IMG/VR virus record: IMGVR_UViG_3300044957_000763
Location: 186,001-250,000 of that record
Reading direction: 5' to 3' (one strand)
DNA length: 64,000 nucleotides
The translations under genes and the position numbers were made by a program. The notes beneath the pieces are model-generated. The model saw nothing but the letters and a program-made list of their open reading frames with translations. It did no database searches and was not told where the DNA came from. This document shows, piece after piece, positions 20,061-32,092 of this stretch; within the stretch, counting starts at the first letter, position 1, and each line of letters begins with the position of its first letter.

Positions 20061-20099
20061 AATGCGTTTATACAGCTTATTCTATATTATAGCATAAAT

Positions 20100-20173: not shown

Positions 20174-20178
20174 GAAAT

Positions 20179-20387: not shown

Positions 20388-21014
20388 TTAGTTATGTGCC
20401 ATTTGAGGTACTTTGGTCAATCTTTCAAAATCAGTCCTGTCTTTGTTGGCATAGATTTTCCAAATGGCTAGGTCAAGTTCTGCAGAATCAACACCAATTT
20501 CATCTGCATAATCCAAATAGATTTTTTCTAGGCGATTGTATTCTTTTTTGCTTCCTGGGGTTGATGTCGGAATATTTGACTCTCCCAAATAATCGCGCAT
20601 AAACTTAAGCAAATGGGTGTCAATGACACCAAAACGCACATTAGGCCTAGTGCAAGTTAAAAAGAAACGAGAGGTTTTAGGACCAATACCATGAATCGAC
20701 TCCAAATCATCGACCGTGCAATTGAAAAGGTCAACACCACTTGAAATTAAAGCACGGAAACAATGCGCAAGCCTGTTGTATTGTCCTAGGCGCGACTCCA
20801 TCAGTTTTTCAAACAAAGCACCTTCAGAATCCATTGTGCGGATTTTGTCAAAAGGGGATGCGCCAACTTTTCCTTTGCTTAAAAAAGAATCAAGAAGCCG
20901 CACTTGCACACTTGCTTTTTTCCCCGCAGCAACAATACAGAAAAGAAGAAAGCACTCTAACTCTTCTTTGGTTCTGTCGAAAATAATTGTATTGTTAGGG
21001 TCTGGAAATCTCAC
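20388..21014 (-). CDS. Helix-hairpin-helix DNA glycosylase-like protein (HhH-GPD/Ogg-like)
   Basis: LESIHGIGPKTSRFFL HhH motif, VIDTHLLKF, ELDLAIW; GTG start. Confidence 0.8.
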   Translation of the reverse strand: MRFPDPNNTIIFDRTKEELECFLLFCIVAAGKKASVQVRLLDSFLSKGKVGASPFDKIRTMDSEGALFEKLMESRLGQYNRLAHCFRALISSGVDLFNCTVDDLESIHGIGPKTSRFFLTCTRPNVRFGVIDTHLLKFMRDYLGESNIPTSTPGSKKEYNRLEKIYLDYADEIGVDSAELDLAIWKIYANKDRTDFERLTKVPQMAHN

Positions 21015-21042
21015 ATGTGGAAGTATACCACATGTGAAAAAA

Positions 21043-21123
21043 TGGCGACCTGTACGGGATTCGAACCCGTCTGATGTCTACCGTGACAGGGTAGTGGGAA
21101 CAACCAAGCTCCCCCCACAGGCC
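21043..21123 (-). tRNA. tRNA-Asp(GUC)
   Basis: CTACC-CT GTC AC-GGTAG, G73, CCA. Confidence 0.9.
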
Positions 21124-21129
21124 ATAAAT

Positions 21130-21205
21130 TGGAGCACCAGGTGGGACTCGAACCCACTACCTCCACATTACCAATGTGGCGTTCATCCATATGAACTTCA
21201 AGTGC
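21130..21205 (-). tRNA. tRNA-Thr(GGU)
   Basis: CCACA-TT GGT AA-TGTGG, CCA. Confidence 0.85.
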
Positions 21206-21211
21206 ATAAAT

Positions 21212-21287
21212 TGGAGCACGCGACAGGATTCAAACCTGCTACATCCGCATTACAAGTGCGGCGTTCAATCTCATGAACTTCGCGTGC
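21212..21287 (-). tRNA. tRNA-Thr(UGU)
   Basis: CCGCA-CT TGT AA-TGCGG, T loop TTTGAAT, CCA. Confidence 0.85.
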
Positions 21288-21294
21288 AAAAATC

Positions 21295-21377
21295 TGGAGC
21301 TGGCGACAGGATTCGAACCTGCGATGTGGAATCCCTGTTTACAAAACAGGTGCAATCGACCTCTATGCAACGCCAGC
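21295..21377 (-). tRNA. tRNA-Thr(UGU) with 11-nt variable region
   Basis: CCTGT-TT TGT AA-ACAGG, V region GAT-TCCAC-ATC, CCA. Confidence 0.8.
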
Positions 21378-21402
21378 GTATCTGTATTATACCTTAAAAA
21401 CT

Positions 21403-21476
21403 TGGCCCCCTCGACAGGAATCGAACCCGTATCATGGGTGTAGAAAACCCAGGCCTTGTCCATTAGACCACGAGGG
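21403..21476 (-). tRNA. tRNA-Arg(UCU)
   Basis: CCCCTCG/CGAGGGG, TGGGT-TT TCT AC-ACCCA, CCA. Confidence 0.9.
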
Positions 21477-21484
21477 GAGAATGC

Positions 21485-21554
21485 ATGCCCTGTATGGAAT
21501 TTAATCCATTCTCCTAGTTTACAGCCAGGTATTGCTCTTCTATACTTACATGGT
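21485..21554 (-). pseudogene. Degenerate tRNA-like sequence with GUA (Tyr) anticodon
   Basis: D stem GTAT/ATAC, loop CT GTA AA, T-like ATGGA-TTAAAT-TCCAT; acceptor only 5/7 paired, no CCA. Confidence 0.4.
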
Positions 21555-21657
21555 GCGCGGTACCACACAGTCCATGCTTTCTGTCCGACTCGGTCAACTG
21601 ACAGGACATAAGCTATTATACCACAGCCTTTGAGCCGGATGCAACCACACTTAAATC

Positions 21658-21739
21658 TGGCCCCTCGAGCGGGATTCGAACCCACATTTTCAGTTCCATT
21701 ACGCTGGACGGTTTAGAAGACCGCGACGACTACCGAGGG
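21658..21739 (-). tRNA. D-arm-less tRNA-Arg(UCU)-like RNA with expanded variable region
   Basis: CCCTCGG/TCGAGGG, 8-nt connector, GCGGT-CT TCT AA-ACCGT, 22-nt V region, canonical T arm, CCA. Confidence 0.75.
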
Positions 21740-22176
21740 ATATGTTGATGAATGGCATTGTGCAGAACAGTGTCTGTATACTGAATTGGTATATTTGGCA
21801 TATTTGATTTGAACGCCTTGGCCTTTTCTTCAATTGAAATTAAGTAATCAGCAGTCAATCCAATCTCAATACATTGCTCAACCTCTTGTGGTTCAATGTA
21901 CCTAAAACCACATTGAGTTCCGTTGAGATAATATGACTTATCATCACGCAGCCCAAGTGCAAAATTTTCTGGAATGGCATACCATTCAGGTGCAATTGAT
22001 AAATCTTTGTTGAGTCCGTGCCTGGATTGCCCTGATTCTGTCAATTCAATTAGGCACAATTTCAGTTTTGAGTCCAGTGTTAGCGGAACTTCGAGGACTT
22101 CAAATAGAGACCATGTTATTTTATTGAGTTGATGCACTGGCAATGAGTTAACTTGGATTTTGATTAATTCACTCAT
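21730..22176 (-). CDS. Hypothetical protein
   Basis: ORF; stop codon lies within the 5' end of the downstream tRNA-like gene. Confidence 0.65.
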   Translation of the reverse strand: MSELIKIQVNSLPVHQLNKITWSLFEVLEVPLTLDSKLKLCLIELTESGQSRHGLNKDLSIAPEWYAIPENFALGLRDDKSYYLNGTQCGFRYIEPQEVEQCIEIGLTADYLISIEEKAKAFKSNMPNIPIQYTDTVLHNAIHQHIPR

Positions 22177-22363
22177 TTTGAAACGTCTCATCTAGCTTGG
22201 TAGAAACTTTGACAACGAAATCTTGAATGTCTTCCTTGAGCAATCCAAGTACATCAGCGACTGGTTGCTCAGCCGCTTTCCCGCGCAATCTGTTCATCAA
22301 AGAACTTGTGATGTCAACTGTCATGCCAACTGCGTGAAGATTTGGGTGGTTCTCGATACTCAT
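22169..22363 (-). CDS. Hypothetical protein
   Basis: 64-aa ORF. Confidence 0.55.
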   Translation of the reverse strand: MSIENHPNLHAVGMTVDITSSLMNRLRGKAAEQPVADVLGLLKEDIQDFVVKVSTKLDETFQNE

Positions 22364-22385
22364 GTTGTTAGTTTACCTTAATTCT

Positions 22386-22460
22386 TGGCCCCCTCGATGG
22401 GATTCGAACCCATACCCTGTCGTTTAGGAAACGACCGCACATCCCTTGCGCTTCGAGGGG
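22386..22460 (-). tRNA. tRNA-Arg(CCU)
   Basis: GTCGT-TT CCT AA-ACGAC, CCA. Confidence 0.9.
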
Positions 22461-22469
22461 ATTTGATAT

Positions 22470-22687
22470 GATTTGACAGGTGAGCGTACCCGAGATTCTG
22501 CTCTATGTCTTGATTTATCTATTGGCCTCTAACCCGACCATCATAGCGTCGCTCACCCGCTAGGTCTGTTTGAGTTGCAGTCTCAGTAGTGCAAGCGACG
22601 AATCTCCTACCTTAAGCGACACTGTCTCGAGGTTTCTCTCCGCGCCTCTTTCGAGATTGGAGCCAAGACTTCTCTGCCTGTCAAATC
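22470..22687 (-). ncRNA. rnpB: Minimal RNase P RNA-like gene (catalytic domain only, no S-domain)
   Basis: P1 11 bp; P2 GUCUUGG/UCAAGAC; P3; P4 ACC-U-CGAGA/UCUCG-GGU with bulged U; P5; P6 pseudoknot; P7; P15-P17; conserved CAA, GGU, AGAUAAAU and CAGAA...GGUA elements. Confidence 0.85.
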
Positions 22688-22692
22688 TATTA

Positions 22693-22917
22693 TTACACAA
22701 CATCTGTGTTATTGTCAACTATTGGCACATGTTTGATATGTGGATATCGTTGACCGTATGTAACACGCACGTGGCACTCATCGCATTCATGCGGGAATTG
22801 CGGCGGGTGTGTTAAAAATGCTTGGCCAGTAGGTATCATCTTGCCTTTGCCGCACACATCGCACTGCATATCTATTTGAATTGTCATCATTGGTGTTTTG
22901 ATTTCCATATTCTTCAC
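22693..22917 (-). CDS. Small zinc-ribbon protein
   Basis: CDVC...HECDEC. Confidence 0.65.
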   Translation of the reverse strand: MKNMEIKTPMMTIQIDMQCDVCGKGKMIPTGQAFLTHPPQFPHECDECHVRVTYGQRYPHIKHVPIVDNNTDVV

Positions 22918-22927
22918 CTACTTTACA

Positions 22928-22950
22928 TGGTTCGCACGACAGGATTTGAA
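22928..22950 (-). pseudogene. Orphan tRNA 3' fragment
   Basis: TTCAAAT-CCTGT-CGTGCGA-A-CCA immediately after the endonuclease stop codon; no 5' T-stem strand. Confidence 0.6.
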
Positions 22951-22951
22951 T

Positions 22952-23383
22952 TTACATCGACCAAATATAGTCTTTAGCATATGTAAAATTAGGTGCGGTA
23001 TTTTTGGCATCAGAGAGCCTGATTGAAGCCTTGCCTTTGCCAGACCAAATTTCAACTGGAACCCATAATACTTCATTGATTTTTGGAACAAAAACAAGAA
23101 ATACATCAATTTGATTTTTAGTATATCCCTTGCGGATTGTTTTTCCGTTTTTGCTTCTTCCACTCCAACTAGATAGATTTACCACAACACTTCCTTGTGT
23201 TCTTTTGTTTGGTTTTCCATCGGCATATTTGACTTGACACCTATACATTTGACCATTTTTATCAATAATACAATCATATAGGCAACCTTCAATTGTTGGC
23301 TTGCTCAGAATGCAGTTGGTTGTAATTGCCCGCTGCTCTGCTGCAAGCATGGCTAAATGACCCTTTTGAGATGTGGATAACAT
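22952..23383 (-). CDS. PD-(D/E)XK homing-type endonuclease
   Basis: KGHLAM...YDCIIDKNGQMYRCQVKY...YTKNQIDVFLVF, pattern of the PDDEXK_5-like family. Confidence 0.8.
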   Translation of the reverse strand: MLSTSQKGHLAMLAAEQRAITTNCILSKPTIEGCLYDCIIDKNGQMYRCQVKYADGKPNKRTQGSVVVNLSSWSGRSKNGKTIRKGYTKNQIDVFLVFVPKINEVLWVPVEIWSGKGKASIRLSDAKNTAPNFTYAKDYIWSM

Positions 23384-23432
23384 TTCAATGTTATACAGCG
23401 AGTTTCCAAGCTATAGCCACTCAATTTCAAAT

Positions 23433-23509
23433 TGGTCTCCCCTGTGCGACTCAAACGCACGACCTTCGGCTTCGCGGACCGATGTTCTATTCAACTGAAC
23501 TAAGGGGAG
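23433..23509 (-). tRNA. tRNA-Arg(GCG)
   Basis: CTCCCCT/AGGGGAG, TCGGT-CC GCG AA-GCCGA, T loop TTTGAGT, CCA. Confidence 0.8.
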
Positions 23510-23515
23510 AATATT

Positions 23516-23824
23516 TTACCCTAAAAACCAATCCGCAAGACCAGCTTGCTCTTTGGGTCTCCATTTTGTCGCCATTTCAGGAGTGGTTAGTATGGCATTA
23601 ACGTATTGGTACCCACATGACATACATTCCCAAAATTCAGGATAGCGGTCAATTAAATCCGGGCAACCACACTCTATGCATGTTGGCACTGTGAATTTGT
23701 CGTGATTGCCTATTTCAAAGTTTGGAAACAGTGCTCCTTTTCTTTGCGACAATACAATCTCACTACAAGGATTAAGTTCGTATATCATTGTGTCTTTGCC
23801 AAAGAAAATTTCGCCCACACTCAT
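23516..23824 (-). CDS. Hypothetical zinc-ribbon protein
   Basis: CIECG...WECMSCG. Confidence 0.65.
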   Translation of the reverse strand: MSVGEIFFGKDTMIYELNPCSEIVLSQRKGALFPNFEIGNHDKFTVPTCIECGCPDLIDRYPEFWECMSCGYQYVNAILTTPEMATKWRPKEQAGLADWFLG

Positions 23825-24133
23825 CTACATATCCACAATTGTATCTAATACAGAAGTCTTGTCTTTTACTTGAGGGTCTAATCTTGAGAATATCTTTTCT
23901 TGACCAAGTTCTGTGAGCCTGAATATTTGCACTGTCCATTGTTCAGACGATTGGCACAATCCTTCATATTTATCTTCGTAGATGATGTCGTTGTCTAGAC
24001 CCCATTGAATGCTTTCTCTCAGAAATCTGTTTCGACCAACATGACCATCGAATACGATGTAGTCTGCCTTTCCATCTCGAAACGCTCTTGTGAATGAGTC
24101 AAGATATTCTTTTTCAGTAAACTTCTGTTCCAT
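23825..24133 (-). CDS. Hypothetical protein
   Basis: 102-aa ORF. Confidence 0.65.
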   Translation of the reverse strand: MEQKFTEKEYLDSFTRAFRDGKADYIVFDGHVGRNRFLRESIQWGLDNDIIYEDKYEGLCQSSEQWTVQIFRLTELGQEKIFSRLDPQVKDKTSVLDTIVDM

Positions 24134-24140
24134 TTAAGAA

Positions 24141-24530
24141 CTATACCCGATTGCGCCATTTGTTCAGCGCATCAATAGCATTAATAACGTCTTCTGAGAG
24201 TTCAGTAGCAGTTTTGGCCTCAAGTTCTTTGATTCTTGCGATAAGTCTTGGCACTAGATTGACCGAAGCTACTGCAAGTTCGGCATTGGCTTTTGCGTTG
24301 TGGTTGTCGCCCAGAAACGTTGCCATGCATTCTTCGTAGTAAAAATTGCATTCTGGATTTCCATAACGCTCTTGCAAGTCATATGGTCCGATTTCCATGT
24401 AATCACAGTCATATTCATCTTGGCTTAATTCATTACAGAACCATGGCAATTCTGTTGCGCCCCTGATTGCTTCGTATTGCTCTATGGCTGTTGCCAAGTC
24501 AACTTCTTGTTCTTCCAGAAAATCTTCCAT
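24141..24530 (-). CDS. Hypothetical protein (Ead/Ea22-like)
   Basis: ATELPW...NAELAVASVNLVPRLIARIKELEA pattern. Confidence 0.65.
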   Translation of the reverse strand: MEDFLEEQEVDLATAIEQYEAIRGATELPWFCNELSQDEYDCDYMEIGPYDLQERYGNPECNFYYEECMATFLGDNHNAKANAELAVASVNLVPRLIARIKELEAKTATELSEDVINAIDALNKWRNRV

Positions 24531-24593
24531 AGTTTATTATGACAGATAGCAGCGCAATGCCATCTGCGGAGGAGCTTACTATGAATAGGTCTG

Positions 24594-24827
24594 TTATTTG
24601 CCGTTGCGCCGGCATTCGCGTTCACCGCTCATTCGTTGATTATCTGACACAATCACCGGAATAGTAATTGGCCAAATAAGACCGCAAAAACCAACCTCGG
24701 CAAGTAACAACCATCTGGGTTGCACCCCTCTTGCAAGTTCTGTTTTGCCTGTGTCAGAAGCCGTATACCATACGTATATTGCCACTATTTGTGCAACCAG
24801 AAGATAAAGCATTATCCATATTGACAT
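24594..24827 (-). CDS. Small membrane protein
   Basis: Two hydrophobic segments; start moved downstream of the tRNA. Confidence 0.6.
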   Translation of the reverse strand: MSIWIMLYLLVAQIVAIYVWYTASDTGKTELARGVQPRWLLLAEVGFCGLIWPITIPVIVSDNQRMSGERECRRNGK

Positions 24828-24848
24828 ATGAATAGTGTACCATAAATT

Positions 24849-24927
24849 TGGAGCGCATGACAGGAATCGAACCTGCATTTTCATCCCTTAACTTATCTAG
24901 TTTCGAAGACTAGTGGTATACATGCGC
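24849..24927 (-). tRNA. D-arm-less tRNA-Arg(UCG)-like RNA with expanded variable region
   Basis: GCGCATG/CATGCGC, 7-nt connector, CTAGT-CT TCG AA-ACTAG, 20-nt V region, T arm GCAGG-TTCGATT-CCTGT, CCA. Confidence 0.75.
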
Positions 24928-24940
24928 GTGAATTGTGACC

Positions 24941-25015
24941 TGGAGGCCGGAACGGGACTCTAACCCGCATTCTTCTCGTTTGCAGCGAGATGCTTGGACT
25001 TTTAGCTATCCGGCC
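24941..25015 (-). tRNA. tRNA-Cys(GCA)
   Basis: TCTCG-CT GCA AA-CGAGA, U73, T loop TTAGAGT. Confidence 0.85.
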
Positions 25016-25536
25016 TTCAGGTCGACACCAAGTACGTATTGTGAGTTGATAACACTCATTCCAACTTGGATTGGTTCAACGGGAAACTGTTTGGTTGCGA
25101 TAACACCCAAAAACATTGGGGATGGCAGGAAATATGCTTTGTCTTTTGGACACAAATCTGTTTCGTGTACTTCTAGCGACGGCAGTTCCTTTGCATTGTC
25201 TGGGTGAACCACCACTTGTGTACAAATTAGTTCCATATCTGAAAAGCGTGAATCAACATCGAGCATTATATTGATGTCATCTATTGACTCGCCTTTAATG
25301 GTTTCTTTCTCTGGTCTCATACTTGTGCTCTTTTCAAGCATGTCCATCAGAACTTGGTCCCAATCTATGTCGTTTTTGGTCAATGGGATGACCATTTCTT
25401 CTTGACCAGCAGACATAACTATCTTGCCTGTCATTGGACTGTATATGATTGAGATTGCCTGGTCTTGTGTTTCGTATCGCGCTAAATTGTCAAGCGGAAG
25501 TTCATCCCGCATCAATACCTTGTTGCATAATTCCAT
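25006..25536 (-). CDS. Hypothetical protein
   Basis: 176-aa ORF; stop overlaps the 5' part of tRNA-Cys. Confidence 0.65.
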   Translation of the reverse strand: MELCNKVLMRDELPLDNLARYETQDQAISIIYSPMTGKIVMSAGQEEMVIPLTKNDIDWDQVLMDMLEKSTSMRPEKETIKGESIDDINIMLDVDSRFSDMELICTQVVVHPDNAKELPSLEVHETDLCPKDKAYFLPSPMFLGVIATKQFPVEPIQVGMSVINSQYVLGVDLKAG

Positions 25537-25557
25537 GCGGTATTATGTCGAAAAATC

Positions 25558-25633
25558 TGGAGCTCCGAGTCAGAGTCGAACTGACGAATGAGGCTTTTGC
25601 AGAACCTTCCCTTGGCCGCTTGGGTACCGGAGC
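25558..25633 (-). tRNA. tRNA-Cys(GCA)
   Basis: AGGTT-CT GCA AA-AGCCT, U73, CCA. Confidence 0.9.
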
Positions 25634-25649
25634 ATAGTAAGCCGGAGCT

Positions 25650-25853
25650 TTATACCCCGGCTAGGTCGCGTTCCTCTTCAATGAGGTTTTGTGCCTCATC
25701 GTGAGAAATATCAATTGCTTGAACGATAAATCGCTCAATGTGGTTGTACGGCAACCACCTGCCTGTTTCTGCGTCGAAGACTCGAGGCACGCCGCCCTCT
25801 TCTGGGATGCGAAGCACTGAACCCTCGAGCTCGAAGTAACTTGTGTTCTTCAT
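25650..25853 (-). CDS. Hypothetical protein
   Basis: MKNTSYFELEG..., preceded by GGAGG. Confidence 0.6.
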   Translation of the reverse strand: MKNTSYFELEGSVLRIPEEGGVPRVFDAETGRWLPYNHIERFIVQAIDISHDEAQNLIEEERDLAGV

Positions 25854-25900
25854 GCTGTGCCTCCTATGCAATGTTAGTATACCACGATTTTGGTATGTTT

Positions 25901-25975
25901 TGGAGCGGGGTACGAGACTCGAACTCGTCTCTTCAGATTGGAAATCTGAGGCCCGAACCTCTAGACCAACCCCGC
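25901..25975 (-). tRNA. tRNA-Gly(UCC)
   Basis: TCAGA-TT TCC AA-TCTGA, U73, CCA. Confidence 0.9.
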
Positions 25976-26084
25976 CTGTGTTGCGCATTGATATTGCGCA
26001 ATCTATTAGACGTTATACAACGTCAAAAAGTTCCATGTTAGTCAAGTTTGTAGACTGGTTACTAGTCGCTACTCTATCGCAGAT

Positions 26085-26125
26085 TGTGTCCACGGGTGGG
26101 ATTCGAACCCACGCTCTCTTTTGAG
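26085..26125 (-). pseudogene. 3' remnant of a class II tRNA
   Basis: CTC-AAAA-GAG V-arm-like hairpin and GTGGG-TTCGAAT-CCCAC T arm; no matching 5' half found. Confidence 0.45.
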
Positions 26126-26160
26126 TTGATGAACCACATCGGTCGTACCAACATGAAATC

Positions 26161-26303
26161 TGGCCCCGCAGATGGAGTCGAACCACCCACTCGTACAAGC
26201 GATATCTCCTCAACAAGCGTTCAAGTGTGTCTTACTCAACAGCACGATGTACGTCATACTACCTTTGATAGCACTATCCAGCTTGCATCCCAGAATGCGG
26301 GGG
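26161..26303 (-). ncRNA. 143-nt tRNA-like RNA (acceptor plus T arm enclosing ~110 nt)
   Basis: CCCCGCA/TGCGGGG-CCA, GGTGG-TTCGACT-CCATC, internal helix CGTACA/TGTACG. Confidence 0.55.
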
Positions 26304-26308
26304 TAAAT

Positions 26309-26384
26309 TGGTCCTCCTGACCGGACTTGAACCGGCTACTTCCTGACAGACAATCAGGTGCTTCGACTCTTGAGCTTCAGAAGG
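26309..26384 (-). tRNA. Atypical tRNA-Asp(GUC)
   Basis: CCTGA-TT GTC TG-TCAGG; pyrimidine at position 37 and A73 are atypical for Asp. Confidence 0.6.
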
Positions 26385-26393
26385 ATAAATTGG

Positions 26394-27578
26394 CTACGCG
26401 GGCTTGATTATCTTGAGAGCTCTTTCCAAGTAAAAATCATATCGCCCTTCTTGTGAAACAATTGGTGCGCCTGGAGTGATGCCTGCGCATCCTTCCACAT
26501 ACACCCTGGCCTTATCATTGACATTATTGTGTGCCAAGTAGAAAAAGTCTTTGCTGGCTGGTCTTTCACCAATGCTGTACCATCCAAACTGCATTCCAGT
26601 AACATGAGTTCGGCAACAGTTTCGGAACGAGAACATAGCTCCTGGGGTGAACAGTCCGCTTTTTGCTCCAGTATACGGCATGAAGTCGTCAACTATCATG
26701 TCGGTGATACTGGCTGGTACGACAGTTGCCTGATATCCCCTTGAACTGCCATGCGAGAATAGAGACCCGCCGATTTCGTGTCTTCCGCCGTGAGCGTAAA
26801 ATGGGAATCCTCCATCAACTCTAAATATCAAATTGACATAGGAGGTTCCAAAATTCACCACGTACATGCCGCTACTGCCGCTATTTGGCAATTTGTCTGT
26901 TCCAAAAACATTGATGCCTATGAGACAGCCACTTGCATTGCAACTGTCCATTTTGTTTGCAAGAGTGTTTCCGCCTACGAATTGGTATCCAATATGACCT
27001 CTGTCAATTATGTCAGTGGTAATGAGTTTGTAGTCACCACCACCAATAGTATCACTATACGCTTCGCACTTAGTTAATTCTATACTAGATACATCAGCAG
27101 AGCCATTAGGCCATATTTCGTTGCTACCAACCAGGAATCCGGTGCTATTTTTACTACCGGTCATGAACTGCACTCGGCACCCCAGTAACTGCATATTGCT
27201 GGTTGATTGAACATCTGCGTCAACCCCGATTTCAAAACCTACCTGCTTATTGCCAAATGTTCGAACACAAACATCTGTGACTCTAACACGCTTAGTTCCG
27301 ATAAACCTAAACGCTGAGGTTCCATCTGCGCCTCGATAATTTATCAAATTCCAAAACGGGTCTGCAACAATATTGCCCTGTAGGTAGTCACCTGGTGTTG
27401 AAGACTTGAACGTGATGGTTTTGTCTATAGTCCACTCGCGCCCAATCCACGGAATATACAGTTGTTTTCCTGTGCCTTTATTGAACTCAGCGGCAGCAGC
27501 AAGAAACTTTTCTGTGTCTGACGCACCAGGCATTTGCGATACGTCAATGATTTTAGCGGAAGTAGTGGAGTTTAGCAT
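26394..27578 (-). CDS. Pectate-lyase-like beta-helix protein (tailspike/depolymerase-like)
   Basis: N-terminal DVSQMPGASDTEKFLAAA..QLYIP, repetitive beta-strand pattern. Confidence 0.6.
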   Translation of the reverse strand: MLNSTTSAKIIDVSQMPGASDTEKFLAAAAEFNKGTGKQLYIPWIGREWTIDKTITFKSSTPGDYLQGNIVADPFWNLINYRGADGTSAFRFIGTKRVRVTDVCVRTFGNKQVGFEIGVDADVQSTSNMQLLGCRVQFMTGSKNSTGFLVGSNEIWPNGSADVSSIELTKCEAYSDTIGGGDYKLITTDIIDRGHIGYQFVGGNTLANKMDSCNASGCLIGINVFGTDKLPNSGSSGMYVVNFGTSYVNLIFRVDGGFPFYAHGGRHEIGGSLFSHGSSRGYQATVVPASITDMIVDDFMPYTGAKSGLFTPGAMFSFRNCCRTHVTGMQFGWYSIGERPASKDFFYLAHNNVNDKARVYVEGCAGITPGAPIVSQEGRYDFYLERALKIIKPA

Positions 27579-27646
27579 GCGTCATCATTAGCCGATGACT
27601 TGTTTCATGCCTGCAAAACTCAAATCTATAGGCCATATGGCAAATC

Positions 27647-27802
27647 TTAATCTTCGTCAACAGCCTTGGATGCCCTAATGAATCTGCGCCAAAGGCTATC
27701 AATCCTCCACGAGCCTCCGCCATGTGCGGAATCGGTCTTACGATTACGAAAATGCAATCGGTCTCTTTTGCGATTGCCGTTCTTTTTCTTGTAATTAGCC
27801 AT
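27647..27802 (-). CDS. Small basic hypothetical protein (51 aa)
   Basis: Manual translation MANYKKKNGNRKRDRLHF...KAVDED. Confidence 0.45.
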   Translation of the reverse strand: MANYKKKNGNRKRDRLHFRNRKTDSAHGGGSWRIDSLWRRFIRASKAVDED

Positions 27803-27820
27803 TGTTCTTCGCTTAAAACT

Positions 27821-27896
27821 TGGCGCGGATGACGGGTACTGACCCCGCTATCTGTTGCGTGACAGGCAACCGGATTAACCATCTTCCTCCACCCGC
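27821..27896 (-). tRNA. tRNA-Asp(GUC)
   Basis: GTTGC-CT GTC AC-GCAAC, G73, CCA; atypical T loop GTCAGTA. Confidence 0.75.
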
Positions 27897-27914
27897 GCAT
27901 ATGATTGGCATTAT

Positions 27915-27994
27915 TGGTGCCGGTCAAGACCTTACTCTACATCCTCACAGAGTCTTAGACTCTGTGAGGCGCCTCTGGTTATAGAGGAACCGGC
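27915..27994 (-). ncRNA. tRNA-like RNA with double-length anticodon arm (UAA) and degenerate T arm
   Basis: GCCGGTT/GACCGGC-A-CCA, D-like CCTC/GAGG, perfect CCTCACAGAGTC/GACTCTGTGAGG hairpin. Confidence 0.5.
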
Positions 27995-28163
27995 GTTTGT
28001 TGGGGCGGCAATTGCTCACCGCCCTATTCCCTATGGATTAACTTGAACAAGTTTACTATGTCCGACCGCACCAGATTATTCTAGCTTTTCCAGTTTCGCT
28101 TGGTGGCCACAAGGTTCAGCTTCTTTTGATGTGCACTTAGCCTCACGAGCTTGTTCGAAGATG

Positions 28164-28192
28164 ATTATACCACAAGACCATTCGTTTGTCAA
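28164..28192 (-). promoter_or_regulatory. Consensus sigma70-type promoter inside the tRNA array
   Basis: TTGACA-17 nt-TATAAT with TG at the extended -10 position. Confidence 0.8.
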
Positions 28193-28206
28193 TAGTGCTT
28201 GGGTTT

Positions 28207-28431
28207 TTACACCAAAAGCACATTCATATCGTTTGGGACACGGTCTCCAGTGGCATTGTAATACGCTTCTTGTGCTTTTTGTAGCACTTCGAGCCAGTGA
28301 GCATTCTCGTCATCTGGATTAAACGCTTCGCCATCATGTGCATCGAGATATTGTTCAGTATTGTCGTTCTCAATCATCAGTCTCAATGCCGCAAGAACTT
28401 CTTCGTTGATTTCGTTCATATGTTCCATCAT
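28207..28431 (-). CDS. Hypothetical acidic protein
   Basis: 74-aa ORF. Confidence 0.55.
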   Translation of the reverse strand: MMEHMNEINEEVLAALRLMIENDNTEQYLDAHDGEAFNPDDENAHWLEVLQKAQEAYYNATGDRVPNDMNVLLV

Positions 28432-28656
28432 ACCTTATTCTTTAGGTCGATTTCCACTATAACCGTCTGTTACAAAGCAGTTTTCTGGTGCCTTTTCAAT
28501 GAAATGCTTTGCCTTGAGCGCAGAGTAAAATTTGCGTATATCGCCTTTGTAATACTGGACACCGCCATGCTTACAGTCTCGAACGCATTTGACATAGAAA
28601 ACTTTTCTATTCACACGGTTGATTTATGAGCGAATTGCGTTTTTACCTGTGAAAAA

Positions 28657-28746
28657 TGGAGGAACGGGTGGGATTCGAACCCACGGAACGCTTTCACGTT
28701 CACTTCTTTAGCAAAGAAGCTGAATAAACCTCTCTCGCACCGTTCC
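28657..28746 (-). tRNA. tRNA-Ser(GCU)
   Basis: CTTCT-TT GCT AA-AGAAG, long V-arm, CCA. Confidence 0.9.
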
Positions 28747-28752
28747 GAAATC

Positions 28753-28841
28753 TGGAGGAGAGCAACGGAATTGAACCGTAGCCACTTGCGCGGCCGTAAC
28801 GCTTTCCAGGCGTACCCCATCACCGTCAGGGATTACTCTCC
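28753..28841 (-). tRNA. tRNA-Ser(GGA)
   Basis: Loop CT GGA AA, long V-arm, CCA. Confidence 0.9.
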
Positions 28842-28861
28842 ATATTGGCATTATACAAATC

Positions 28862-28949
28862 TGGCGGAACGCAGAGTACTCGAAACTCAACCCTTTCAGG
28901 TCCCATCCCTTAGCAGGGGAGGCAGGTTCGCCTGTCCTGTTTACGCTCC
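28862..28949 (-). tRNA. tRNA-Ser(GCU)
   Basis: Loop CT GCT AA, long V-arm, G73, CCA. Confidence 0.85.
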
Positions 28950-28954
28950 ATATT

Positions 28955-29025
28955 TGGTGGCAACTTGTGGTCTCGAGCCACAACACCGGCCCTGGGGCCG
29001 GCTGTCCGTCCTACCGGACGTCGCC
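28955..29025 (-). ncRNA. 71-nt degenerate tRNA-like RNA
   Basis: GGCGAC/GTTGCC-A-CCA, TCCG/CGGA, CCGGC/GCCGG with 6-nt loop, TGTGG-CTCGAGA-CCACA. Confidence 0.45.
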
Positions 29026-29031
29026 AAATTC

Positions 29032-29120
29032 TGGCGGATAGCTGGGGAGTCGAACCCCAAAGGCCTTATCAGCTCACCTGTTTTCGAAACAGTTCCCATC
29101 ACCCATTGGGTTGGCTATCC
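29032..29120 (-). tRNA. tRNA-Ser(CGA)
   Basis: Loop TT CGA AA, long V-arm, G73, CCA. Confidence 0.9.
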
Positions 29121-29263
29121 ATTTGTTTCCGGGTGGCTCCCCACCCGGAGGTAATTCAGCGCACTGAACCACCAATTTCGACCGAAGGTCATAACGCTGT
29201 TCTCACGAACTGGCCTCGCGCCGCGACAGAGGAAGTCTTCAGTCCTCTGCAACTATTATACCA

Positions 29264-29350
29264 CGGCGGAAGCAGTGGGAATCGAACCCACGAAACCTTT
29301 CAGTTCAGGCCGCTTCAAACGGCTGTCCTCGTCCGTGCCGGGCTACTTCC
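29264..29350 (-). tRNA. tRNA-Ser(UGA)
   Basis: Loop TT TGA AG, long V-arm, G73. Confidence 0.8.
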
Positions 29351-29372
29351 GCTGTGGTTTGTTGATAAATCT

Positions 29373-29445
29373 GGAGAGGCTAACGGGAATCGAACCCGTG
29401 TCTTAACATTGGCAATGTTATGTATTACCGCTATACGATAACCTC
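29373..29445 (-). tRNA. tRNA-Gly(GCC)
   Basis: TAACA-TT GCC AA-TGTTA, U73, CCA. Confidence 0.9.
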
Positions 29446-29457
29446 GTTTTTGCTCAG

Positions 29458-29529
29458 AGCGGAAGACGGGATTCGAACCCGCAACTTCTTGCCTGGCAGG
29501 AAAGCACTCTACCATTGAGTTACATCCGC
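29458..29529 (-). tRNA. tRNA-Gly(GCC)
   Basis: GCGGATG acceptor, loop CT GCC AG, CCA not encoded. Confidence 0.8.
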
Positions 29530-29538
29530 ACTGAGCAT

Positions 29539-29907
29539 TTATTCTTCTTGTTCCATGTTTAGTTTACGACCTTCGGCTGCGCTGGTTGCAGTGTTTTTGG
29601 TTTGCCATAGACCAATTCCAATTATCGCACCTAGAATCAAGGCAAGTATCAATCCTTGTTTTATCGCACTCAACCACAGTTCCGCAGAAGACAGTTGTCC
29701 AGACCAGCTTAGTCCTGAGTGACTTCCAGGACCAATAACTGGAGCGTATTTAAGCAAGACCCATTTACCATTAACCCATAAGAATTCGTTTTCTTTGCAG
29801 CAATCACACAATTCATCTGACCACAAGTGCGCGTTACCCATTGGGCACTTTCGATATAACAGCGGTAGAACCACTGTTATCACACTTGCCATTCTGCCTG
29901 TAATCAT
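29539..29907 (-). CDS. Hypothetical membrane protein
   Basis: C-terminal hydrophobic helix; start uncertain. Confidence 0.5.
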   Translation of the reverse strand: MITGRMASVITVVLPLLYRKCPMGNAHLWSDELCDCCKENEFLWVNGKWVLLKYAPVIGPGSHSGLSWSGQLSSAELWLSAIKQGLILALILGAIIGIGLWQTKNTATSAAEGRKLNMEQEE

Positions 29908-30299
29908 CCCAGTGAAATTCCATATTCTGCCGGAAGAGCATTATATTCTGTCCATTCTGCAAAGCAACTTTTACACAGTGTCTTAAGCCACCCTGCTCGC
30001 CGGCAAAGTGCGCCTGGTTCGCCACAACATTCACATGTCTTTGCGGCTAACTTTTCTGCCCCTTCGATAATTTCATACACTTGGTCAAAAACATTTTCTT
30101 GTAAAGCACCAATGTAGTAACGCAATCCACCGAACTTTTCCTTGATTTGCAAGATTGTGTAATCAGGTGCCAGCTTTCTAATGTCTTTGTCAAGCTGTGC
30201 AATGATTGGATACCAACCAGCATCGCATTCAAGAAAAACATTTCTTCGACCGCCGTCCCAATGGTGTTTAAGTTGTTGCTCAAGTTGTTCTTTGGTCAT
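29904..30299 (-). CDS. Conserved phage hypothetical protein
   Basis: CDAGWYPII...QIKEKFGGLRYY...CECCG...WLKTLC. Confidence 0.75.
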   Translation of the reverse strand: MTKEQLEQQLKHHWDGGRRNVFLECDAGWYPIIAQLDKDIRKLAPDYTILQIKEKFGGLRYYIGALQENVFDQVYEIIEGAEKLAAKTCECCGEPGALCRRAGWLKTLCKSCFAEWTEYNALPAEYGISLG

Positions 30300-30308
30300 T
30301 GTTTTCCT

Positions 30309-30746
30309 CTAAGGTGTATTGATTCCAGCAAGGCCAAGCAATCTTTCCTGCTCGGCAATTGGCAACTTCTTGAATTGCTCTGACAATGATTCCACTTTCT
30401 TTTTTCTTTTCTCTCTTTGCTCTTGTGCCTTGCGTTTCTTGTCCCACTTTTGATGTTTTTCCCACCAGTCAGCAAGAGACCGCGCATTGGCATTCTTTCC
30501 ATCGTAGATGTACTTGTCTTGTTCGGCCGCAGACATGATTCTGATTGTACTGCACAGCAATGCAGTCCAGTTGTCTACTTCTGACTGATTGCCATAATAC
30601 TCACTCGCGGCGGTTTTCCATGCATCAGTTTCAGCCTTAGTGGGTTTCAGTCCGATAGCAGGAAGCAAATACAAAAGATGACCAGCAACACGCTTCGACT
30701 CTGCTTGGCGTGCGTTTGGTTCGGAGTAATCTGTACGACATGGCAT
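30309..30746 (-). CDS. Conserved phage hypothetical protein
   Basis: MPCRTDYSEP...LADWWEKHQKWDKKR; start moved downstream of the tRNA. Confidence 0.7.
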   Translation of the reverse strand: MPCRTDYSEPNARQAESKRVAGHLLYLLPAIGLKPTKAETDAWKTAASEYYGNQSEVDNWTALLCSTIRIMSAAEQDKYIYDGKNANARSLADWWEKHQKWDKKRKAQEQREKRKKKVESLSEQFKKLPIAEQERLLGLAGINTP

Positions 30747-30799
30747 AACATAACCATTATAACACACTGGTTTCAAGTTGTCAAGTGCCTTTGTAAATT

Positions 30800-30875
30800 T
30801 GGCGCCCCAGGACGGACTCGAACCGCCGTCTCTTACGTTCGAAGCGTAAGTTTCTATCCACTGAATTACTGGGGC
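30800..30875 (-). tRNA. tRNA-Arg(UCG)
   Basis: TTACG-CT TCG AA-CGTAA, CCA. Confidence 0.9.
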
Positions 30876-30881
30876 AAATTT

Positions 30882-30968
30882 TGGTGGCTCTCCCCGGACT
30901 CGAACCGGGACGCTTTGTGGGCACGATATTTTGAGTATCGCATGTACTACCAATTTCATCAGAGAGCC
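30882..30968 (-). tRNA. tRNA-Leu(CAA), with V-arm
   Basis: CGATA-CT CAA AA-TATCG, A73, CCA. Confidence 0.9.
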
Positions 30969-30974
30969 GAAATC

Positions 30975-31049
30975 TGGAGGCCGGGGTGGGACTCTAACCC
31001 ACGCTCTTTCACTTTGCAGGCGAACGCCTTAACACTTGGCTACCCGGCC
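30975..31049 (-). tRNA. tRNA-Cys(GCA)
   Basis: TTCGC-CT GCA AA-GTGAA, T loop TTAGAGT, U73, CCA. Confidence 0.85.
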
Positions 31050-31064
31050 GGTTGTTCTTAAATT

Positions 31065-31148
31065 TGGTGCCGCACCTCGGAATCGAACCGAGACAAGAGG
31101 ATGATTTTAAGTCATTTGCTTTTACCAGTTTAGCTACTCCAGTGCGGC
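31065..31148 (-). tRNA. tRNA-Leu(UAA) with 5-nt insertion after the acceptor stem and no V-arm
   Basis: GCCGCAC-TGGAG-TA-D arm; loop CT TAA AA; V region CTCTTGT. Confidence 0.75.
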
Positions 31149-31173
31149 ATTGTTTATATGTAAGCGCAAAACT

Positions 31174-31250
31174 TGGTGCTCCTACTCAGATTCGAACTGA
31201 GACTTTCATAGGTTTGAGCTATGTGACTCTACCAATTGGCCTATAGGAGC
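31174..31250 (-). tRNA. tRNA-Leu(CAA) lacking V-arm
   Basis: CATAG-CT CAA AC-CTATG, 5-nt V loop, A73, CCA. Confidence 0.85.
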
Positions 31251-31252
31251 AT

Positions 31253-31338
31253 TGGTGCGGATGAGAGGACTTGAACCTCCAAGGGGTTTCCCCCACAGCC
31301 GTCTCAGGACTGCGCGTTTACCATTTCGCCACATCCGC
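31253..31338 (-). tRNA. tRNA-Leu(GAG)
   Basis: Loop CT GAG AC, V-arm, CCA. Confidence 0.9.
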
Positions 31339-31343
31339 AAAAT

Positions 31344-31427
31344 TGGACCGGGTAAAAGGACTTGAACCTTCACGTCTTTCGACAAATGCTCCTAAGGCAT
31401 TCGCGGCTACCGTTACGCCATACCCGG
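31344..31427 (-). tRNA. tRNA-Leu(UAG)
   Basis: AATGC-CT TAG GA-GCATT, V-arm, U73 (atypical). Confidence 0.85.
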
Positions 31428-31431
31428 ATTT

Positions 31432-31517
31432 TGGTCTCGATGACCGGATTTGAACCAGCACGCTTTGTGGGCGCTACCACCTCAAGGTAGTGCGTCTACC
31501 AATTTCGCCACATCGAG
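31432..31517 (-). tRNA. tRNA-Leu(GAG)
   Basis: CTACC-TT GAG GT-GGTAG, V-arm, CCA. Confidence 0.85.
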
Positions 31518-31523
31518 ATATTT

Positions 31524-31601
31524 TGGTCCCCCCTGCGAGACTCGAACTCGCAATACTTTCGGTTCTGAGCCGAACGACTTTACCAATTTGCCCAAAGGGG
31601 G
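31524..31601 (-). tRNA. tRNA-Leu(CAG) lacking V-arm
   Basis: TTCGG-CT CAG AA-CCGAA, short V loop, CCA. Confidence 0.85.
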
Positions 31602-31700
31602 AAATTCTTTCACATCGGGGCAGGACAACCAGGCTAGTTGCCACTGCCCCCACACACCGCCTAAGTGTTGCCATCACTTAGGACTTTGAACTACACTATT

Positions 31701-31740
31701 CTATTTTCAAGGTGCCACTGTTTCAAATCACTGAAACTGT
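31701..31740 (-). promoter_or_regulatory. boxB-like hairpin and boxA-like element at the start of the tRNA array
   Basis: GTTTCA-GTGATT-TGAAAC hairpin followed by GCACCTTGAAAATAG. Confidence 0.45.
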
Positions 31741-31755
31741 ATGTATGTAAATCGT

Positions 31756-31789
31756 AAAAAAAGAGGACTCGCCTTTCGGTCGAGTCCTC
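31756..31789 (-). terminator. Intrinsic terminator (attenuator) upstream of the tRNA array
   Basis: GAGGACTCG-ACC-GAAA-GG-CGAGTCCTC followed by T7. Confidence 0.85.
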
Positions 31790-31826
31790 TCTCCTCTTTC
31801 CCCTTATGGGTTGTCAGTATTTCTCT

Positions 31827-31967
31827 CTACTTACAACCCCGGCTTTTTGGTTTGGTCTCGACCTTTTGCTCCCTAAGACAATCTCTGAGGGTACGCAGTG
31901 ACGACAAGGTACCGGATAGACTATCCGTTCCCCGTAAACCTATGGTTGTTGTCGTTGCGAAAAACAT
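31827..31967 (-). CDS. 46-aa codon-sampling leader peptide
   Basis: MFFATTTTIGLRGTDSLSGTLSSLRTLRDCLREQKVETKPKSRGCK; AGGA RBS; lies between promoter and terminator. Confidence 0.75.
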   Translation of the reverse strand: MFFATTTTIGLRGTDSLSGTLSSLRTLRDCLREQKVETKPKSRGCK

Positions 31968-31988
31968 AATTTCGATTCCTATGACGCT

Positions 31989-32018
31989 ATTATACACAAA
32001 TCGTTCCGTCTCCTGCAA
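31989..32018 (-). promoter_or_regulatory. Promoter for leader and tRNA array
   Basis: TTGCAG-18 nt-TATAAT with TG extended -10. Confidence 0.7.
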
Positions 32019-32092
32019 GGCCTCCAGACAAAAAGTCAAAAAAGTCTTGCTTCGAACCGAACAGCCCCTGTATAATGCGACATGATTATACC

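Follow-up and report, generated by a model that had tools for sequence, protein, structure and literature searches.

Upstream of a cluster of about 35 tRNA genes in a giant phage lies a short leader ORF, predicted from comparative evidence to be translated, which is followed by an intrinsic terminator and whose codons come almost only from the eight amino acids that the tRNA cluster serves. The best reading of this arrangement, to which we assign a probability of about 0.6, is that of a ribosome-mediated transcription attenuator that samples the tRNAs of the array it precedes and that might turn on the tRNA genes when those tRNAs run short. The DNA examined (hereafter the window) is a stretch of 64,000 nucleotides, positions 186,001 to 250,000 of IMG/VR record IMGVR_UViG_3300044957_000763, a phage contig of 478,840 bp. 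The leader had been singled out in an earlier note made from the sequence alone, and the observation recorded there is real and far beyond chance, with all of its elements found at the stated coordinates on the minus strand. The components of the locus are as follows.

32027..32046, minus strand: T-rich block with two TTGACT-like repeats just upstream of the -35, conserved in the close relatives; a possible UP-like element of P1, with its function inferred.
31989..32018, minus strand: promoter P1, with TTGCAG at 32018-32013, an 18-nt spacer and TATAAT at 31994-31989.
31977..31980, minus strand: Shine-Dalgarno sequence AGGA, 9 nt before the ATG.
31827..31967, minus strand: leader ORF of 46 sense codons, from ATG at 31967 to TAG at 31829-31827.
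31872..31955, minus strand: putative sensor run, codons 5-32, encoding only Thr, Ile, Gly, Leu, Arg, Asp, Ser and Cys with 22 distinct codons that cover all 21 elongator anticodons of the array.
31899..31955, minus strand: long predicted hairpin inside the run, in which ACGACAA (31955-31949) pairs with TTGTCGT (31907-31901), capped by hairpin H1, in which CGGAT (31927-31923) pairs with ATCCG (31917-31913).
31854..31863, minus strand: region 2, GGTCGAGACC, the 5' strand of the proposed antiterminator.
31808..31839, minus strand: hairpin H2 (GGGTTGT / ACAACCC), which holds the leader stop codon.
31778..31787, minus strand: region 3, GGACTCGACC, the inner part of the terminator 5' arm plus the first loop bases; the 3' strand of the proposed antiterminator.
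31755..31790, minus strand: intrinsic terminator, with a 10-bp G+C-rich stem (31790-31781 / 31771-31762), an inner CC-GAAA-GG cap and seven T residues at 31761-31755.
31698..31726, minus strand: candidate promoter P2 (TTGAAA, 17 nt, TAGAAT) downstream of the terminator, overlapping the invariant block TTGAAAAYAGAATAGTGT (31709-31692).
31617..31682, minus strand: two conserved hairpins in the 5' leader of the tRNA precursor, both with TGGCAAC in the loop.
19077..31601, minus strand: array of about 35 tRNA genes for Leu, Cys, Arg, Gly, Ser, Asp, Thr and Ile(UAU) plus one CAU tRNA, interspersed with small ORFs.

The -35 hexamer of P1 matches the consensus at only 3 of 6 positions, so that P1 was not listed by a consensus promoter scan, and the terminator was missed by the accompanying scan because its loop is 9 nt; the energy of the terminator hairpin is about -19 kcal/mol, and it is the only strong canonical terminator on the sense strand of the 13-kb array, where it lies upstream of the tRNAs. 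In the array, ARAGORN finds 29 tRNAs at 19077-31601, to which Rfam, relaxed ARAGORN settings and reading by hand add Leu-UAA, two Asp-GUC, Arg-UCG, Arg-UCU and Ser-GCU. All of these serve the eight amino acids, apart from the CAU tRNA, which the earlier note took as Ile2. This tRNA lacks initiator hallmarks and shows no similarity to E. coli tRNAs at the level of blastn, so that only the absence of initiator features could be read in choosing between Ile2 and Met.

The run of 28 codons is the longest of its kind in all six frames of the window (the next is 18 codons), contains all six Leu codons once each and has ATA as its only Ile codon, while the other two frames contain stops. The earlier note estimated the chance of such a run at (33/61)^28 = 3e-8; we obtain the same value under that assumption, 1e-9 with the phage's own amino-acid usage (in-set fraction 0.479) and 3e-7 from dinucleotide shuffles of the run itself (mean 16.3 of 28 in-set codons, maximum 25 in 20,000 shuffles). 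Every codon of the run is readable by an array tRNA, and given the peptide sequence the coverage of 21 of 21 elongator anticodons has P = 0.001 with phage codon usage and 0.005 with uniform usage. The finding was picked post hoc from 64 kb, and the eight amino acids cover 33 of 61 codons, but the number of codon positions in six frames is only about 1.3e5. Coincidence is therefore very unlikely, all the more so because the pattern is maintained through sequence change in homologues whose flanking protein is about 50% identical, and because these homologues are 11 distinct sequences from different samples rather than assembly duplicates of one sequence.

The eleven homologues (related sequences are labelled L003, L009 and so on below) have a flanking protein that is 47-81% identical to that of the window. 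In all 11, the hexamers and spacing of P1 are identical while the spacer sequence varies, the ribosome site is present as AGGA or AAGGA, the ATG lies 21-23 nt after the -10, and an open frame of 45-49 codons with a fixed start is kept. Indels inside the run are multiples of three (3, 3, 6 or 15 nt), whereas those in the tail behind the run are of 1-2 nt and shift its frame freely. Of 30 nonsynonymous states in the run, 25 stay within the eight-residue set and 5 do not, and 7 of 7 inserted codons also stay within it, against 46% expected (P = 2e-5), although the replacements are physico-chemically arbitrary (G to D, L to T, R to S); 21 synonymous states were counted as well. Occasional Ala, Val and ATC codons do occur in the run of some homologues. 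In distant homologues the peptide sequence itself is not conserved, only its amino-acid set, and a Pfam search with the 46-residue peptide gave only a sub-threshold chance match.

At the level of codons, 20-21 of 21 anticodons are covered in every homologue, against about 17 expected, and the same-codon fraction is 0.71-0.89 against 0.34-0.51 in the flanking gene, although part of this synonymous-site conservation can be due to the RNA hairpins inside the run. Codon losses are compensated elsewhere: AGA moves from codon 28 to codon 12, and in L003 CTG is regained at codon 31 after being lost at codon 24. The same eight-amino-acid set appears in arrays of distant relatives, namely the complete array of L024 and that of L023 together with L141. 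Whether leader codons covary with array anticodons had been proposed beforehand as a test; since the amino-acid set does not vary among the relatives it cannot covary, and at the anticodon level the differences do not track. One clade lost CTG but keeps tRNA-Leu(CAG), L003 lost AGG but keeps tRNA-Arg(CCU), and the L009 genome has tRNA-Gly(CCC) and tRNA-Arg(CCG) without GGG or CGG in its leader, while its leader has AGA, AGG and CGA, for which no matching tRNA was detected. The nearly one-to-one mapping of codons onto anticodons described in the earlier note is thus not strictly kept in relatives.

Searches of IMG/VR for more relatives with the flanking protein and with its profile returned only the contig itself, GenBank phages gave no DNA or protein match, and a metagenome scan gave one true relative and one chance hit in a high-G+C coding region. 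Exact-motif scans of IMG/VR with the terminator core and with the P1 pattern found only this locus, so that there is no close paralogue elsewhere in the contig. A scan with the invariant P2-like block returned unrelated contigs and was uninformative.

Several conserved hairpins with some compensatory changes lie both inside and after the run. The long hairpin in the run appears in the RNAalifold consensus, with a few compensatory pairs, and in single-sequence MFE folds, and might act as a pause or timing element. Four pairs of H2 show compensatory changes, and the stop codon stays within or at this hairpin despite the frameshifted tails. The outer stem of the terminator covaries (AGAGG/CCTCT, AAAGG/CCTTT, GGGG/CCCC). 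These structures, together with nucleotide conservation that is very high compared with the neighbouring gene and the fact that gene callers did not call the ORF in the related contigs, might suggest a structured non-coding RNA gene in which the open reading frame is incidental. We consider this very unlikely in view of the fixed distance between SD and ATG, the frame that is open in 11 of 11 homologues, the frame-preserving indels and in-set replacements of the run, and the stops in the other frames; moreover, RNA structure cannot explain an amino-acid set that equals the tRNA set.

Just after the run, GGTCGAG (31863-31857) is complementary to CTCGACC (31784-31778) in the terminator 5' arm, extended by CC/GG across an A-A mismatch; a 7-nt complement alone has P of about 0.04 in shuffles. 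Region 2 (GGTCGAGACC) occurs once in the window and is invariant in all homologues, although it is read as VET, RSR or GRD in three different frames. The inner terminator arm and its loop bases (GGACTCGACC) are likewise invariant, as expected for a strand with two alternative partners. None of the nine pairs between regions 2 and 3 ever varies, so that there is no covariation for the proposed antiterminator helix. The helix is present in the MFE of the nascent RNA in 4 of 4 sequences tested (the window, L009, L010 and L011), whereas equilibrium folding of the full-length RNA always favours the terminator and therefore says nothing about the kinetic choice. When a ribosome footprint was imposed on the folds, A-site positions 2-31 left the antiterminator at P of about 1, while positions from about 32 (35 in L009) to 41-43 abolished it, so that the run ends where stalling stops being permissive.

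The "off" state is not robustly explained. A ribosome parked at the stop codon, 24-30 nt past region 2, does not cover that region. In the full-length consensus fold, region 2 pairs with an SD-proximal UCGA in the 5'-UTR in 9 of 10 sequences, but this pairing is lost in L010 and changes register in L009, and in masked folds it wins only for the window sequence, where the antiterminator is abolished (P 0.01), and not in L010 (0.71) or L009 (0.94). Sterics, a trailing ribosome or polymerase pausing must be invoked.

Between the terminator and the first tRNA lies the candidate promoter P2, which matches the consensus at 10 of 12 positions in the window. Its core block (TTGAAAAYAGAATAGTGT) is invariant even in L009, although the -35 is not kept there, and it would start the transcript just before the two hairpins of the tRNA precursor leader, which are structurally conserved with a different sequence in L009. 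Sigma-54 and alternative -10 readings of this block were considered by eye and rejected because the spacing is wrong. Perfect consensus promoters also lie inside the array, so that the array may be expressed without readthrough of the terminator and the leader need not be its only control. An alternative, which we regard as possible but unlikely, is therefore that P1, the small ORF and the terminator form a self-contained small gene, as their layout would allow, with the array transcribed from P2 and internal promoters. The codon set of the ORF would still report on the tRNAs of the array but through a different output: the peptide or the terminated RNA of about 225 nt might act in trans, as rnTrpL and peTrpL do (PMC6614838, PMC7968998), or the pairing of the 5'-UTR with region 2 might control translation of the ORF itself. 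Against this alternative stand the lack of conservation of the peptide sequence, the frameshifted tail, the variability of the 5'-UTR pairing and the loss of the P2 -35 in L009. It also does not explain why the inner terminator arm and its loop bases are invariant and complementary to region 2.

In the mechanism that we propose, P1 starts a transcript whose first 140 nt are translated. While RNA polymerase moves toward the terminator, the ribosome must decode 28 codons that together call on every tRNA species encoded by the array and on no amino acid that the array does not serve. If any of these decoding steps were slow because a tRNA is scarce, cleaved or uncharged, the ribosome would stay upstream of GGTCGAGACC (31863-31854), which would pair with GGACTCGACC (31787-31778) as soon as the latter is made, blocking nucleation of the terminator hairpin and letting polymerase read into the tRNA genes. 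If decoding were fast, the ribosome would run over GGTCGAGACC and into H2, the antiterminator would be prevented and the terminator would form. Since the output (tRNAs) would relieve the signal (slow decoding), this would be a negative-feedback controller of tRNA supply that sums delays over many codons. What the sequence comparisons establish is the existence and conservation of the elements, a translation-type constraint on the run, its restriction to the amino-acid set of the array, its conservation at the codon level, and covariation in the terminator and in H2; actual translation of the ORF, the antiterminator pairing, the coupling of stalling to readthrough, the timing and the physiological trigger are inferred. 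The interpretation in the earlier note, a multi-tRNA sensor in which stalling at any of these codons frees an antiterminator, is therefore partly supported: its core idea of a leader whose codon set mirrors the downstream array, coupled to a terminator and a complementary upstream segment, holds up as well as sequence comparison allows, but strict anticodon tracking is not upheld and cleavage of tRNAs by anticodon nucleases as the trigger is speculation.

In its most far-reaching form, which we consider about as likely as not, the leader would be a tRNA-supply homeostat, built as a checklist of one or a few codons for each tRNA species of the array, whose summed decoding time sets, through antitermination, how much of the array is transcribed. 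It would be the first attenuator known to regulate tRNA genes and the first to sense about 21 tRNA species at once, and it would let a giant phage switch on its replacement tRNAs exactly when host tRNAs for those codons fail; other arrays, in this and other huge phages, may carry analogous leaders for the remaining amino acids. How phages, or any organism, regulate tRNA genes in response to the availability of specific tRNAs is essentially unknown, the known sensors acting on synthetases or biosynthetic operons. A leader that gates its own array would represent a new regulatory logic of product-sensing feedback on tRNA genes summed over many codons, would give a direct functional argument that phage tRNA arrays respond to tRNA shortage rather than being expressed constitutively, and would provide a compact natural part for building reporters of the supply of individual tRNAs. 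It also makes the question accessible with a 270-bp fragment in a defined translation system.

Large phage-encoded tRNA sets that can replace host tRNAs have been discussed as countermeasures to host tRNA depletion or anticodon nucleases (PMC10264068, PMC11555353, PMC11464382), and repair-type genes (HD, LigT-like) sit next to the arrays of relatives of the present phage. As far as their titles and abstracts show, those works concern the tRNAs themselves, and our literature searches returned no paper describing a translated leader that senses the tRNAs and gates the array. The rnTrpL RNA and peTrpL peptide of Sinorhizobium (PMC6614838, PMC7968998) illustrate how a terminated leader transcript of a ribosome-dependent attenuator could have a second life in trans, although there is no evidence here for trans targets and only the composition of the peptide is conserved. 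No Rfam family matches the leader, and no hit to the Rfam leader families (Thr, His, Leu, Trp leaders and others) or to T-box was found in 31745-32020 at gathering thresholds or at E up to 0.1. In T-box riboswitches and pheST-type attenuation, as proposed here, the regulated products belong to the translation apparatus and the signal is tRNA status, but T-boxes bind uncharged tRNA directly and need no translation, and pheST uses Phe codons only and controls a synthetase rather than tRNA genes. The closest layout is that of the multivalent leader-peptide attenuators of amino-acid operons (the thr operon leader with Thr and Ile codons and the ilvGMEDA leader with Ile, Leu and Val, besides trp, his, leu and pheA), with a promoter, SD, short ORF rich in regulatory codons, intrinsic terminator and an upstream segment complementary to the terminator's 5' arm, and with more than one amino acid sensed; the run even starts with a Thr4-Ile stretch reminiscent of thrL. 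The present leader differs from these in the position of its stop codon beyond the proposed antiterminator strand, so that the classical geometry in which a ribosome at the stop masks region 2 does not apply, in preceding tRNA genes rather than genes for biosynthetic enzymes, and in a putative sensor of 28 codons for eight amino acids, with about one codon per tRNA species rather than tandem repeats of one codon.

The window is part of IMGVR_UViG_3300044957_000763, a 478,840-bp viral contig, has a G+C content of about 44%, and predominantly encodes proteins that exhibit no match to Pfam or PHROG entries. No relatives were found among the GenBank phages, and the contig therefore looks like the genome of an uncultivated giant phage. 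The elements that we read on the minus strand in front of its tRNA gene array are as follows.

32018-31989, minus strand: promoter P1, consisting of TTGCAG, 18 nt and TATAAT
31980-31977, minus strand: AGGA, the Shine-Dalgarno (SD) sequence
31967, minus strand: ATG of the leader ORF, which is 46 codons long
31829-31827, minus strand: TAG, the stop codon of the leader ORF
31790-31755, minus strand: terminator with a 10-bp G+C-rich stem, an inner CC-GAAA-GG cap and seven T residues
31601 down to 19077, minus strand: a long series of tRNA genes, the first of which lies about 150 nt beyond the terminator

A simple consensus scan missed both the promoter, whose -35 hexamer matches at 3 of 6 positions, and the terminator, whose loop is 9 nt long, but both are clear and both are conserved in the relatives described below. 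ARAGORN detected 29 tRNAs in the array, and Rfam, a relaxed ARAGORN run and the direct reading of anticodon loops added Leu-UAA, two Asp-GUC, Arg-UCG, Arg-UCU and Ser-GCU, for a total of about 35 genes, in agreement with the count in the earlier note. These genes serve Leu, Cys, Arg, Gly, Ser, Asp, Thr and Ile (UAU), and are accompanied by one CAU tRNA, of either Met or Ile2 identity, that lacks initiator hallmarks. The tRNA with the UAU anticodon (19077-19170, minus strand) is 94 nt long and carries a long variable arm, which makes it class II-like, as in Leu, Ser and Tyr tRNAs. This oddity is conserved in distant relatives (17935-18029 of L024, the complete array from the genome that carries the leader homologue L003, and 13250-13343 of L141, a part of the array of the L009 genome introduced below), and the charging identity of this tRNA may not be Ile. 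A sequence at 26088-26157 (minus strand) has a good T-arm but no convincing cloverleaf and is possibly a decayed tRNA gene. Outside the array, a lone tRNA at 47368-47442 (plus strand) has the anticodon UCA, which would read UGA; it is labeled SeC by ARAGORN but scored as an ordinary tRNA by Rfam, and might be a suppressor or recoding tRNA.

Codons 5-32 of the leader ORF encode only the eight amino acids served by the array, and this is the longest such run in any of the six frames of the window (28 codons, as compared to 18 for the runner-up). The per-position probability of the run is 3e-8 with uniform codons and 1e-9 with the amino-acid usage of the phage itself, and was estimated as 3e-7 from dinucleotide shuffles of the run, of which the best of 20,000 reached 25 of 28. 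The other two frames of the run contain stops and are ordinary. Beyond this composition, the codons of the run cover all 21 elongator anticodons of the array under standard wobble, every codon is readable by an array tRNA, and the only Ile codon is ATA, which is the one Ile codon that the array can read. Given the peptide sequence, full coverage has P = 0.001 with phage codon usage and P = 0.005 with uniform usage. The observation made in the earlier note is thereby confirmed, and coincidence is a very unlikely explanation for it.

The divergently transcribed gene at 32075-32848, which specifies a protein of 257 aa, has homologues that range from 81% down to 47% identity. The contigs of these homologues, together with one pattern scan of metagenomes, yielded eleven distinct versions of the leader region from different samples, all of which are syntenic, with the same flanking genes and a tRNA array that starts with Leu genes. 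The neighborhood, which is conserved in all relatives, includes an IMPDH/GMP-reductase family gene directly after the array (17949-19034, minus strand) and, on the other side of the leader, HSP20 (named from the annotation of the syntenic relatives) and MazG-like genes (32881-33321 and 33322-33879, plus strand). An AdoCbl-II (cobalamin) riboswitch that scores above its gathering threshold lies at 42796-42881 (plus strand), upstream of a 426-aa ORF (42959-44239) with DUF6580 and an N-terminal methylation motif; this is unusual cargo for a phage, and the ORF is conserved in relatives. The most distant complete version of the leader, L009, derives from a 1,363,254-bp contig of an Armatimonadota MAG (JAFDWS010000002.1), in which the region at about 420-461 kb (stretches L009, L016, L023 and L141) is syntenic for more than 40 kb. 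This contig could carry a prophage or represent a mis-binned very large phage or a chimeric assembly, and it hints at the host phylum. The arrays of relatives also contain or adjoin tRNA-repair-type genes (HD domain, 2',5' RNA ligase/LigT-like) and, between the tRNAs, homing-endonuclease-like ORFs (HNH, PDDEXK_5); these two gene types were seen at 18466-19053 of L024, at 11481-12059 and 14831-15406 of L141, and in the stretches L005 (4485-4919) and L006 (484-1137) of relatives.

P1, the SD, the ATG at a fixed distance and an ORF of 45-49 codons are present in all eleven versions. All of the indels inside the run are multiples of three (3, 3, 6 and 15 nt), whereas those behind it are 1-2 nt, such that the tail is read in different frames in different relatives. 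By this comparative signature, the run is selected as a translated frame and the tail is not selected as protein, and a purely non-coding RNA is very unlikely. Among the non-majority codon states in the columns of the run there are 21 synonymous states, 25 amino-acid changes that stay within the eight-residue set and 5 that leave it (to Ala or Val only), whereas single-nucleotide neighbors of these codons would stay in the set 46% of the time (P = 2e-5). All seven inserted codons are also in the set. The replacements are chemically arbitrary (Gly to Asp, Leu to Thr, Arg to Ser, Asp to Gly), and the set itself is chemically incoherent, since it includes Leu and Ile but not Val, Phe or Met, Arg but not Lys, and Asp but not Glu. 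What is conserved is membership of the set served by the tRNA array and not a peptide. At residues that are conserved between the window and a relative, the codon is the same in 71-89% of cases in the run, as compared to 34-51% in the neighboring gene. Every homologue covers 20 or 21 of the 21 anticodons, where about 17 are expected from its peptide sequence, and losses are sometimes compensated: AGA disappears at codon 28 and appears at codon 12, and in L003 CTG is lost at codon 24 and regained at codon 31.

The arrays of L003's genome (L024) and of the L009 genome (L023 plus L141) contain the same eight amino acids and the CAU tRNA, and nothing else. The amino-acid set does not vary among the relatives, and the covariation between leader and array that had been proposed as a test in the earlier note has no variation to act on at that level. 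At the level of the anticodon, the differences do not track. The largest clade lacks CTG but keeps tRNA-Leu(CAG), L003 lacks AGG but keeps tRNA-Arg(CCU), and the L009 genome has tRNA-Gly(CCC) and tRNA-Arg(CCG) with no GGG or CGG in its leader, while the L009 leader has AGA, AGG and CGA, for which no array tRNA was detected. The claim that the leader senses the exact tRNAs of the array is therefore too strong.

The consensus fold of ten sequences contains the terminator, with three outer pairs that show compensatory changes; a hairpin, H2 (31839-31808), that holds the stop codon and has four compensatory pairs; a long hairpin inside the run that is capped by a smaller one, H1; and, in 9 of 10 sequences, a pairing of the SD-proximal UCGA with the segment GGTCGAGACC (31863-31854), referred to here as region 2. 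The terminator is the only strong canonical terminator on the sense strand of the whole 13-kb array, and it lies upstream of the tRNAs. Region 2 is invariant in all homologues, even though it is translated as Val-Glu-Thr, Arg-Ser-Arg or Gly-Arg-Asp depending on the frame, and its conservation is therefore at the nucleic-acid level. Its proposed partner in an antiterminator, GGACTCGACC (31787-31778), comprises the inner eight bases of the 5' arm of the terminator and the first loop bases, and is likewise invariant while the outer stem drifts, which is the pattern expected for a strand that must pair with two alternative partners. The nine antiterminator pairs never vary, so there is no covariation for or against them, and a 7-nt complement alone would arise by chance with P of about 0.04. 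When the transcript is cut just before the 3' arm of the terminator, the minimum-energy fold contains the antiterminator enclosing H2 in the window and in the homologues L009, L010 and L011.

When a 30-nt ribosome footprint was imposed on the nascent RNA, A-site positions 2 to 31 left the antiterminator at a probability near 1, with a few isolated dips (to 0.55 in the window, and to 0.52 and 0.09 in L009), whereas positions from about 32 (35 in L009) to 41-43 abolished it. In these folds, the in-set run ends exactly where a stalled ribosome would stop being permissive, and the few out-of-set codons after it would act as a spacer. The weak spot in this scheme is the unstalled state. The stop codon lies 24-30 nt beyond region 2, so a terminating ribosome does not mask it, and in the masked folds the antiterminator is lost only in the window sequence, where the 5' UTR captures region 2, and persists in L010 and L009. 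Steric exclusion by the ribosome sitting in H2, a trailing ribosome, or pausing of the polymerase at H2 until the ribosome arrives might prevent the antiterminator, but all three possibilities are inferred.

There are also complications that the earlier note did not recognize. Between the terminator and the first tRNA there is a promoter-like site consisting of TTGAAA, 17 nt and TAGAAT (31726-31698), which matches the consensus at 10 of 12 positions. Its core block, TTGAAAAYAGAATAGTGT, is invariant even in L009, although the -35 is not kept there. A transcript starting at this site would begin just before two conserved hairpins (31682-31660 and 31651-31617, minus strand), both of which display TGGCAAC in the loop; L009 has hairpins at the same places with a different sequence, and these structures may be a processing, stabilizing or antitermination element. 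In addition, perfect consensus promoters (TTGACA, 17 nt, TATAAT) with TG-extended -10 elements lie inside the array at 30784-30756 and 28192-28164 (minus strand). The first of these is followed by an ATG only about 10 nt after the -10, giving a near-leaderless mRNA, and the second is conserved in L024. The array is therefore unlikely to depend on readthrough from P1 alone, and the leader may add a conditional input, mainly to the first Leu/Cys/Arg block or to the whole array if the polymerase continues. The alternative that the leader is a self-contained small gene, whose translation still reports on these tRNAs but has another output, is possible, although we regard it as unlikely.

On balance, the interpretation put forward in the earlier note is supported in part. 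We consider it highly likely that the codon content of the leader is functionally tied to the array, and assign a probability of about 0.6 to the view that the tie is stall-dependent antitermination that feeds back on tRNA transcription. The elements themselves, their conservation and the restriction of the run to the array's set are established by sequence comparison, whereas the antiterminator pairing, the stalling of ribosomes and the resulting readthrough are inferred from sequence alone.

No Rfam leader or T-box model matches the element, and the peptide matches no family. Full-text literature searches found no description of a leader peptide or attenuator in front of a tRNA array, and none of the retrieved papers on phage tRNAs and anticodon nucleases, as screened by title and abstract, mentions such a leader. 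We therefore do not place the element in any curated family. Its architecture is nevertheless that of the ribosome-mediated attenuators, among which the multivalent thr and ilv leaders are the closest in spirit. It differs from these in that the genes it would control are tRNA genes, in that the putative sensor is a 28-codon checklist for eight amino acids rather than tandem repeats of one codon, and in the geometry of its stop codon.
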